A stretch of DNA of 64,000 nucleotides, taken from the NCBI GenBank assembly GCA_038496445.1, contig JALMLS010000573.1, positions 186,001 through 250,000 of the forward strand, in the 5' to 3' direction. The notes below the pieces were generated by a model. That model saw nothing but the letters and a program-made list of their open reading frames with translations. It did not search any database and was not told where the DNA came from. The position numbers were made by a program, and so were the translations under genes. Of the stretch, positions 5,965-19,035 are shown in pieces; the stretch's first letter is position 1; every line of letters starts with the position of its first letter. The DNA is from Trichosphaerium sp. ATCC 40318 (taxonomy: Eukaryota; Protista; Tubulinea).

Positions 5965-6881
5965 ATGGTACCTCAACTACAACGAAGGTAATTGTACTTA
6001 GCAAACACCACAGGCGTCACCCTGTACTAAGCCGACAAACCTTACAATCCAACGCTTGACGATTGATTTTATTGATAAGACTGTCAATACGGTTCTTGAG
6101 GTTTTCACTACCTCAAACACGGTTGTGAAAGCACTGGGACTCAATTCAGATGAAATGAGACCTTATTTCGCTAGTGTCGTTCAAAAAGCTTCAAAATACC
6201 CATCAGTACGTTATCGCTGTTGTGTCCACGCTATGAAATGTATTCAGATAAGTTTTAAGCTTAACCTGCCGTGTCTTGTTGTAAGAGGTTCTGAGACTCA
6301 TCAATTTTACTAAGGTCATTGCTCTGGATGGCACTGATGTTGTTGGGTTTGACCTATGCTTCGACTATAGAGTTAAAGATAAAGACACTATCCAAATAAA
6401 AGATCTCTCGCCTAAAATGCAGATTTGGAAGCTGTTCTATTCTCAGTGTGAGGCTAAAGCTCTCCCTGCTTTTAACCTCAAGAACCTACCAGAAGAAGAA
6501 GGCTATATAATACGTTCAGCAGGAGCCGGATTAAAGAAGGCGTACACCGGACAAGGACATTTAGCAGCAATGGTATTGATACTTAATTTCAAAGCAATTT
6601 GATTTGTGGATTCTACTTATCTTCCTAAGGTTGTTAAGTTTGTTGAGGGTTTATTGGACGCAGGGTATAGATGCGTATATGCCATAGCTACCCATCACGT
6701 GGTTCACAGGAATATTTCTAGAAGTGACATTCTTCACGAACAACACTTTGATTTGTTCACGTGCAAAGATGGGACAAAGCCTTTGTCAAAGATAATAATT
6801 CCACCAAGTGCTCTCGTGTATGTGTCAGAGTTGTCACATGCGCTATTGAGAGGGTTAGTCAATAATCGCGCCAAATTGTAG
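5965..6881 (+). CDS. GNAT-fold (insect AANAT-like) acetyltransferase paralogue 1 with C-terminal PTS1 (-AKL)
   Basis: ATG-only exon 1, then ASPCTKP...VIALDGTDVVGF...AGLKKAYTGQGHL (acetyl-CoA motif A)...GYRCVYAIATH...RAKL*. A clear paralogue lies at 26899-27864. Confidence 0.65.
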
Positions 6882-6980
6882 TCTTTCAATGAAAGTCGCT
6901 GTAAGCTTTTTCAATACACTCTAGCAGTTAACACCAGTCTATCTAAAATATAGCTTAAATAAGGGAATAGCCAGCCTGAC

Positions 6981-9113
6981 ATGGATGTAATTGGAAATGC
7001 GCCTAAGCAAGCCAAAGCAATCTTACGAGCGTCTGGTATGCCATTTAACGGTTTAAACTCCAACTACAATGTCGTTTAAACGTCAGATGGTTATTTAATG
7101 TTTATTAGATAATACAGGATCCAAACCTACTCTAATAAGAATTCTTTGGCACAAACCAGTTCTTAAACACTTTCTTGAGCACTGTTCATTCGAAGAAGTA
7201 TCTACATTGACTTTATCGTCTAAAACCTTACGGCAGACATTATTCAAAGGGTTTGTAACGAAAATACTTAAAAATAGATTCCGTGGAGTCGAAAAATCAA
7301 AAGAACAAGGGAAGATTTTGGCGTCTGTAAATGATTGTTTTGATGATGAAAATCTAGTGGACTATCAACGATGGATATTGATTGGTATACGAGGCATTGC
7401 GAGGAGAGCTGGTATAACACATACAGGAGAAGGGTTTTACACTATCGCCGAAAACACGTGTTACCTTATAATTAGACGGTACACCCTTTTTTTTTCTCTT
7501 TTTTTTCTTCTTACGGGTAGGTGTTGATTAAACTGCTAGGATATTGCTTGAAGCGTCAGTTATCATTGGTAATGCATCAGATAGTTTCAAGGTTATTGGA
7601 TACGATGGTATAAGAATAGCAGTCGAAGAGCTTAGGAACGAAAGCATGTATGAGTGCTTGAGGTACTTCAGGTTTATTTTTTTATGGAATCCTTTAGCTA
7701 AAAATAAAACTACAGCGCAGACCTTGACGCTATCCCTCAAACTTGTGATGTACCTTTGGAGGTTGACGATAATTCTAAGGCATTTTTAAGAGTAGCTGAA
7801 TTTGAGCTGCCACCACCTGCGATAATTGTTACGTCTTCAGAACATAGAGTAAGAGAAGTCTTTGCAGCGAAGGTATATTTTATTTTCTAAAACCTGTTGA
7901 AGCGAATGCAATGTTTTTACAATTTTTTAGGCAGCAAGGAGGCCTTACTTTCAGCCTATGGCGTTATTATGCTTATTGAAAGAAGAGGGATACCATATCA
8001 CATTAAAAGCATTTCTTAGTATTGATAAGCACATACATGATTGCATGTTATCTTTGCTTACAATGGTTAAAAAAATCTCGCTTACGAACGATTCAGCTAT
8101 TGTCACATCTCAAAATTTTGAGTTTGTTCGGGACTTTGTTCACAAGATTGAGGTAAATGGAGGCATTTCTTGCACTAGTGACCATCAACAAAACGCACAA
8201 GAGCAAGCGAAAGCGTATCAAATTGAGTACGCACCTGTTCTTCTTGTAACTTTGTTTTTTGATTTTTTTTAGAGTTGATTTGGATAGTATTATGACGAGA
8301 GAGTTACCTTGTATCATAAGAGATGGAACAATGTCTTTTTGTGATGTCACGTTTATTATAGTTGATAAAGATGTACCAGTATTCAAAGTAAAATCATCAA
8401 AATATGCCGTTTGCGCTAATAACAAGTGCGTACAAGTAAAACCTTTTTTTTTTGCTCTTTTTTTTTTGAACTTACTTTTTGTTTTTTTTCAAAAGGTACT
8501 TTATGAATCAGTTCACAGGTGGTTTCAAACAATCAGATGTCATACCATATATCCTAGTTCAAGATGAAACACCTGAGTCTGCTTTTTATTTCTTGAATAT
8601 TATGACAAGTATGAACCATATAGCAGAGGTAAATACTCTCAAAGAGAAGAAACTACCTTATAAAACACTTAAAGGTATTGTTGTTAAGCTCGGAAAGGTA
8701 CTTCATAACCTACCCTTTAATGAAACTAGAAATGTACTAATAGTATACTCTCTTAGGTATTGGCTGAGGATCTTCAGAGTTATGTATTTTGGACGTTAGT
8801 TATTGAATGTGATATTGAGCTATTTGATTTGCTGGAAGATGCTAATAGTTTATTGAAAAAACCAAGTTTTGATAAATGTGGTGAATTGTTTACATTAGTA
8901 TCAAAGAATTACTTGAAAGGAAATGGGTTCATGTATTATCTTTTCCAGAATAAGAAAAGAATAAGGATTCCTGAAGCATTGTTGCTTATATTTATTCAAA
9001 AATGTGAAGAAATCAATTCTTTTTTTACGTCAAAAGCAGATCTATGGATACTCGCAAGTACGCCTTTTAAAAATAATCCAGCAAAATTATTTTATTATGT
9101 AGCGGTCACATAA
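6981..9113 (+). CDS. Multi-exon protein with H4-like and H3-like histone folds followed by a BTB/POZ domain
   Basis: IRGIARRAGITHTGEGFY...SFKVIGYDGIRIAVEEL aligns to H4. RVREVFAAKAARRPYFQPMALLCLLKE...VTSQNFEFVRDF aligns to H3. FCDVTFIIV...YFMNQFTGGFKQS...DETPESAFYFL is BTB-like. GT-AG junctions keep the frame; the 3' end is uncertain. Confidence 0.7.
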
Positions 9114-17854: not shown

Positions 17855-19035
17855 ATGGAAGCTGTACTAATAAAGCCAGTAAAAATTAGCTACTCGGAAC
17901 GCTCCAAAACCCCAGATTGGCAAAACATCTGCGATGATGTCTTATTCGCAATACTTCAATCTGTATTACAAAATTACGGCTTCGAGAACTACCACAGCCT
18001 ACAATTAGTTTGCAAATCGTGGACAGCTGTAGCAAAGAGCGATGTGATTTGGAGGAGGGTCCTAAGTACAATGGGTGACTTGGGGAGGCTTAAACAAGAA
18101 TTATCGAAACAACAGTTTTTTTCAGGTTTAGCTTACCAAAAATCACCTAAAGACATTAAACCGTGTTGGATAAACGTCAGGGATGGTAAAAACGTCATTG
18201 AAATGACCAGCGGCTTCGCTTTGACATTGTCCGTGGCAAACAAGAGCATCATAGATTTTAGAGATAGACACCGGCATTCTTCATCTGAACGTTTGTTTTG
18301 TTCTGCATACCCCGAAAGGGATGCGAAAGCAATGGCAGACATGAAACGTATCACCTGGCAACTCAATAATGGATTCATCTTTCCAGATTTGCCTCTACAC
18401 GTGCAATTCCAACCGTTTTTGAACTTGTTTACGAACGGCGAATATTTGGTCAGGATTCAACATCGTGCCTTTGTAACACGTGTTATACATGACGGACTTC
18501 GATCAAATGTTCGCAGCCAAGCAAGTATTGTCAATATCGGACCTTTCGACCAGTACTGCCCCATGAATGGACAAATGTACTATGGAGAATATGCTCATGT
18601 AACGGATGAATATGGCAAATATCTTGATCAATCACGTGTTAAGTACTACGAAAAGCTTATAACTGAAACTACATGCAGACCTCTTGAGTAATGTTGACGC
18701 CTGGAAACTACAAACCTACCAGATTACACCACTTTAGAGGTTTAGACTTGCCACGGGCCACTTCCTTTTTATTAGACGGACACCACAAGATGCAAGCGTA
18801 CGAGAATTGTAAAATGTTCCCTTCAGTATTGCGCATTCAGTGTTTTAACCAAGGCACTCTTGAGAAATACAAAAGTATTTTTACTGGCTTTGATGATGCA
18901 TCAGAGAAGTGGAAGTTGTTTTCACGCTGGTTCAATCAGTATAACCGATCAATTGATATCAAAGAGGACGAGTATTTTGAGATGACACCAGAAGAGGAGC
19001 GTGCCATGTGGAAGGAGATAGAACGAAAAATGTAA
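17855..19035 (+). pseudogene. Intronless F-box + ParB/Sulfiredoxin-like domain gene with a single frameshift at ~18686-18691
   Basis: F-box ICDDVLFAILQSV...LQLVCKSWTAVAKSDVIWR. LDQSRVKYYEKLI...RPL continues in the next frame as VML...FLLDGHHKMQAY. Adding one base restores a single ORF. Confidence 0.65.

Follow-up and report, generated by a model that had tools for sequence, protein, structure and literature searches.

Gene structure and transcript evidence

The window, that is, the whole 64,000-nucleotide stretch of DNA that was analysed, contains at positions 6981-9113 of the forward strand the coding part of a single eight-exon gene with a 570-residue product, as derived from splice sites, reading frame and RNA contigs. 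Seven short, T-rich introns of 46-73 nt with GT..AG boundaries connect three reading frames into one open frame, which fills this interval exactly. The gene is real and expressed. A preliminary description had proposed an intron-containing gene on the plus strand over the same interval, which was confirmed, and the peptides quoted in it are present in the spliced protein. The features of the locus are listed in the table below.

Transcript evidence was obtained from run X1, the sole public run that contains 6913-8407. This run is not recorded as RNA, and its derivation from cDNA follows from the absence of introns in its contigs. Three spliced contigs span 6913-8407 and comprise five GT..AG junctions (7035/7109, 7478/7540, 7662/7716, 7872/7931 and 8226/8273), which correspond to introns 1-5. 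The acceptor of intron 1 was set by the RNA at 7108/7109, which yields three residues more than the alternative at 7118. At the 5' end of contig 1, position 6913 is preceded by 9 nt of non-genomic sequence, GAGTACGGG, and, because this tail resembles the end of a template-switch oligo, the transcript probably starts at about 6913. The segment between 6913 and 6981 contains no ATG, so that the first one is that at 6981. Contig 3 joins exon 5 to exon 6, and the histone-like exons and the first BTB exon are therefore parts of one transcript rather than of separate genes. Intron 6 is supported by the Pfam BTB alignment, which is continuous over the 8425/8496 junction.

The coding region immediately upstream (6417-6881, plus strand) leaves a gap of only about 30 bp to the transcript start at 6913, a very tight intergenic spacing; the 91-residue ORF at 6606-6881 matched no Pfam family. 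Further ORFs on the plus strand of the window include one of 261 residues at 958-1743 with a PLD-like domain (PF13091, PLDc_2, E=2.4e-8, with SACK1 also matched) and a very basic N-terminus rich in Arg, Lys and Ser. A single-exon ORF of 278 residues at 17855-18691 was assigned to the F-box-like family PF12937 (E=3.9e-5) and is followed, with a stop/start overlap, by an ORF of 114 residues at 18691-19035 that was attributed to no family.

Table. Features of the gene, with positions in the window and the basis of each assignment.
Feature	Position	Strand	Basis or remark
5' untranslated region	6913-6980	+	contig 1 of X1
Exon 1, start codon, residues 1-18	6981-7035	+	junction 7035/7109 in RNA
Exon 2, residues 19-142	7109-7478	+	acceptor from RNA
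F-box-like motif in exon 2	7123-7248	+	Atlas features, in-register alignment
"H2B-like" stretch in exon 2	7252-7344	+	claimed in the preliminary description
Histone-like segment 1, first half in exon 2, intron 2 inside	7387-7633	+	
Exon 3, residues 142-183, later half of histone-like segment 1	7540-7662	+	both junctions in RNA contig 2
Exon 4, residues 183-235, acidic linker, pI 4.5	7716-7872	+	RNA junctions; no Pfam match
Claimed H3 alpha-N-like stretch, at the end of exon 4	from 7846	+	
Histone-like segment 2, claimed as H3-like	7846-8152	+	
Exon 5, residues 236-334, most of histone-like segment 2	7931-8226	+	RNA junctions
Exon 6, residues 334-385, start of BTB	8273-8425	+	junction 8226/8273 in RNA contig 3
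Exon 7, residues 385-452, middle of BTB	8496-8697	+	inferred from GT..AG sites and frame; outside the RNA contigs
Exon 8, residues 453-570 and stop; BTB ends at ~8801	8757-9113	+	inferred phase-0 splice; outside the RNA contigs
C-terminal helical region in exon 8, 103 residues	after ~8801	+	no Pfam, PDB, viral or metagenome relatives

BTB domain and N-terminal motif

Pfam searches with single exons retrieved no family anywhere in the protein, BTB included, and PDB sequence searches with exons 6 and 7 taken singly returned chance matches only. A 67-residue core spanning the exon 6/7 junction (8334-8604) matched the Pfam BTB family PF00651 with E=8.8e-4 and 19.9 bits, just under the gathering cut-off of 20.5 bits. 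The match is borderline since the submitted peptide represents the domain incompletely, covering profile positions 9-71 of 110. The same core was used for a PDB sequence search, in which all the matches (15 of 15) were to the BTB domain of KEAP1 in the same register, at weak E-values of 0.16-1.1. The profile match and the common KEAP1 register point to a divergent BTB/POZ domain at about residues 345-467, which we judge to be real but very divergent, and they uphold the earlier placement of a BTB domain downstream of the histone-like exons.

Residues 24-65 display a hydrophobic pattern like that of an F-box. According to Atlas language-model features, the nearest neighbours of exon 2 were F-box clusters, with a score of 0.92 over only 133 shared features. 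A local alignment likewise brought the motif into register with the product of the Pfam-positive F-box-like ORF at 17855-18688 in the window (p=0.023), and a single-sequence AF2 model placed three short helices at this position, with the low confidence that applies to exon 2 as a whole (pLDDT 48). Neither exon 2 nor sub-pieces of 47 and 70 residues matched the Pfam F-box families (PF00646 and PF12937) at E<=10. With each line of evidence at p about 0.02-0.1, we consider it likely that the N-terminus is an F-box. The weak H2B likeness that had been noted just downstream of this motif found no match in Pfam or in the PDB sequence search.

Tests of histone similarity

The preliminary description had read the centre of the protein as a pseudo-histone doublet, in which an H4-like segment is followed by an H3-like one. 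Comparison of the 62-residue segment 1 with the H4 string given there yielded p=0.015 in local and p=0.0016 in global alignment; these values overstate the similarity because the segment had been chosen for its H4 likeness. Scanned over the whole protein, the H4 string reached p=0.065, so that the alignment does not rise above chance. The alignment to H3 alpha-N was at chance level (local p=0.91). Neither the single exons nor the joined 62-residue segment matched a histone-fold family in Pfam at E<=10, and no histone chain was retrieved by PDB sequence searches with exon 2, exon 5 or the joined segment.

Given that the filters of hmmscan conceal weak matches, custom HMMs were built from 120 archaeal histones (collected with an HMfB seed, whose sequence is 100% identical to P0002) and from 120 H4 proteins (collected with the H4 string of the preliminary description as the seed), and were run with all filters off. 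The archaeal-histone HMM reported no domain on the protein, whereas 40% of 5000 shuffled sequences did obtain one. The H4 HMM scored -2.7 bits over residues 111-123 only, corresponding to p=0.12 against 5000 shuffles. As a positive control, the archaeal and H4 HMMs detected each other's families at 14-28 bits.

Profile-profile comparison with hhalign gave P=0.011 for segment 1 against the H4 profile, over 10 columns only, which correspond to the motif IRGIARRAGI, and nothing for segment 2 against the same profile. A two-row profile of both segments reached p=0.06 with H4 and p=0.23 with the archaeal histones, as assessed against column shuffles. The corresponding control, H4 against archaeal histones, was aligned with Prob 92% over 59 columns. 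A gap-free alignment of the two segments over 69 residues, in the same register, had a non-significant score (p=0.8), and an internal duplication giving rise to both histone-like halves is not supported. Nor are the segments basic, with pI values of 5.8 and 8.1.

Thus, Pfam, PDB, the targeted HMMs and hhalign revealed no histone-fold match at the sequence level while the controls worked as expected, which leaves the doublet claim unsupported. The likeness to H4 and H3 would appear to consist of a 10-residue chance motif combined with generic helix-loop-helix spacing, with no demonstrable homology. Very divergent histone folds, such as those of Sos and ABTB2, could escape sequence tests of this kind.

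Structural leads in the central region

Both central segments have helix and loop lengths as in the histone fold, with an alpha2 of about 27 residues and short loops containing a strand each. A single-sequence AF2 model of exon 5 (pLDDT 52) had the order helix-strand-long helix-strand-helix, again as in the histone fold. Searches with this low-confidence model in Foldseek and VIA-align returned weak rows with winged-helix-like entries on top, and no histone chain was among those listed; overall, the models of exons 5 and 2 retrieved weak, unrelated rows only. Atlas features of exon 5 pointed exclusively to histone-fold families, with scores of 0.75-0.77, a range below the value of 0.8 under which a third of shuffled proteins also score. 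The Atlas result for exon 7, namely fragments of acetoacetate decarboxylase at low recognition, was rejected as noise. As exon 7 belongs to the BTB domain, Atlas may mislead when applied to exon fragments. The single-sequence models (pLDDT 48-52) are too poor to decide the fold, and a very divergent histone fold therefore keeps a small share of the probability.

Relatives and origin

A search of 1.84 billion cluster representatives produced no true relative of exon 2, and a word search with exon 5 yielded no candidate. PDB sequence searches with exons 2, 5, 6, 7 and 8 gave chance matches only. Scans of IMG/VR with exons 2, 5 and 8, as well as two scans of JGI metagenomes, found no relative, both types of scan being sensitive to close relatives only. 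The window contains no paralogue of the gene.

Two types of candidate were discarded during these searches. The match of exon 2 to P0001 was spurious, as it involved a translated tandem repeat that hit one 27-residue stretch 13 times, and two IMG/VR entries (L001 and L002) shared a 10-residue word by chance in a phage ORF. P0001 is a protein of 1245 residues with about 13 near-identical repeats of 85 residues, and its E-value of 1.8e-20 was attained purely by summing the short match "KGFVT..K..F". This case illustrates that repeats can mimic a strong match in a search of representatives. Separately, the source genome is seemingly absent from protein collections, because the gene's own exons were not retrieved either.

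The window is AT-rich eukaryotic DNA, with a GC content of 0.31-0.44, and the composition of the gene matches that of its flanks. With its seven host-type GT-AG introns, the gene is cellular, as had been supposed.

Interpretation

In our assessment, the locus somewhat more probably than otherwise holds a lineage-specific, expressed amoeba gene for a 570-residue protein of the cullin-RING-ligase adaptor type, which combines an F-box-like motif, an orphan centre and a BTB domain, and whose histone likeness is due to chance. The proposed layout comprises the F-box-like motif at residues 24-65, a mostly helical centre at residues 66-335 (~270 residues), the BTB domain at about residues 345-467 and a helical tail of 103 residues. 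In the most likely mechanism, dimerisation and/or attachment to a cullin-3-type scaffold would fall to the BTB domain and Skp1 docking to the F-box-like motif, while targets would be bound by the orphan central region. The earlier suggestion of an E3 adaptor or histone-chaperone decoy may thus be retained as to the cullin-adaptor type, which appears reasonable in view of the BTB domain and of an F-box-like N-terminus that had been overlooked, and is dropped as to its histone part.

A link to ubiquitin ligases would be missing altogether if the BTB domain only self-associated, as it might in a transcription or scaffold protein, and the N-terminal motif were no functional F-box. Consistent with this, Pfam does not recognise the F-box, and the position that we take, from a motif located by eye, to be the hydrophobic-x-Glu of cullin-3 adaptors reads F-K-Q in the predicted BTB domain. 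Several roles of BTB domains beyond cullin-3 docking are also described in a BTB survey (PMC1257465). However, the protein carries two distinct cullin-adaptor motifs, of which the F-box-like one aligns in register, and we regard an exclusively self-associating protein as rather improbable.

Alternatively, the centre may indeed be a double histone fold, though an extremely divergent one, whose two folds pair within the chain as in animal ABTB2/BTBD11 or Sos and which is joined to the F-box-like motif and the BTB domain, in which case the protein would be a histone-mimicking or histone-binding adaptor. Several of the above observations fit such a fold: the alpha1-L1-alpha2-L2-alpha3 spacing of both segments together with their gap-free, if non-significant, mutual alignment; the order of elements in the exon 5 model; and the restriction of the Atlas features of this exon to histone-fold families. 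A precedent with a BTB domain is found in animal ABTB2 (PMC13088155). Against it stand the failure of Pfam, PDB, the targeted HMMs and hhalign to provide statistical support under working controls, the missing histone chain among the Foldseek and VIA-align entries for the low-confidence exon 5 model, the non-basic character of the segments, and the frequency with which shuffled proteins match Atlas scores in this range. Taken together, the sequence tests lower the prospect of a double histone fold, which we consider unlikely. Still less should be expected of the more specific proposal that a diverged double histone fold is here combined with BTB and F-box as the first such architecture outside animals and independently of ABTB2.

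An acquisition of the gene, or of its histone-like part, from an amoeba giant virus with an H4-H3 doublet of the Marseilleviridae type had also been suggested. Amoeba giant viruses encode histone doublets, and these are readily recognised as histones, whereas no H4 or H3 similarity is detectable here. BTB and F-box proteins are also numerous among the products of such viruses (PMC4209131). Nevertheless, the seven spliceosomal introns are short, T-rich and of the host's GT..AG style, the GC content matches that of the flanks, and the IMG/VR scans of exons 2, 5 and 8, which are sensitive to close relatives only, disclosed no relative, so that the suggestion lacks support and a viral source is most improbable.

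On balance, we regard the gene as that of an ordinary, fast-evolving and lineage-specific cullin adaptor with an unexplained central domain. If so, it is another F-box/BTB adaptor from a repertoire that is expanded in amoebae, their viruses and their symbionts, and its main interest lies in the presence of two cullin-docking motifs in one chain and in a centre of 270 residues with no detectable relatives. A double histone fold, if true, would extend the known range of its combination with BTB beyond animals (PMC13088155). A ligase adaptor equipped with such a histone-dimer mimic would, in addition, point to histones or their chaperones as targets.

Comparison with known systems

With the H4-H3 (and H2B-H2A) doublets of Marseilleviridae, the protein shares only the claimed order of H4 before H3 and the 10-residue motif that resembles the end of H4 alpha1. 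It differs from them in that H4/H3 profile similarity is not significant and the segments are not basic, as well as in being encoded by a cellular, intron-containing gene for which no viral relatives were found, and in the fusion to ligase-adaptor motifs.

ABTB2 consists of a double histone fold, which is defined by an intramolecular pseudodimer, followed by ankyrin repeats and BTB, and it is known from animals only (PMC13088155). The present protein is similar to ABTB2/BTBD11 in that two successive helix-loop-helix segments, each as long as a histone fold, precede the BTB domain. In contrast, it has no ankyrin repeats, as no exon matched Ank, and only ~35 residues lie between segment 2 and BTB; furthermore, it possesses an F-box-like N-terminus, and a histone fold is not demonstrable.

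The cullin-3 BTB adaptors of the KEAP1, KLHL and SPOP classes are matched in the BTB domain, as judged from the Pfam profile and the KEAP1 register, and in the helical extension that follows it. Here, however, the BTB domain is very divergent, with the tested part just under the gathering cut-off, it has no Kelch, MATH, zinc-finger or ankyrin partner, and it is located near the C-terminus, after an orphan region of 270 residues and the F-box-like motif.

SCF F-box proteins are resembled in the N-terminal hydrophobic pattern of ~42 residues, in its register with the F-box-like protein of the window and in the Atlas similarity. Unlike in these proteins, the motif is Pfam-negative and is combined with BTB in one chain. 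A limited literature search found no published description of an F-box and a BTB domain in the same chain, which does not prove that none exists, and in the consulted passages of the BTB survey the F-box appears only as a partner of Skp1 (PMC1257465). Both types of protein have been expanded in amoeba-associated bacteria and giant viruses too (PMC4209131).
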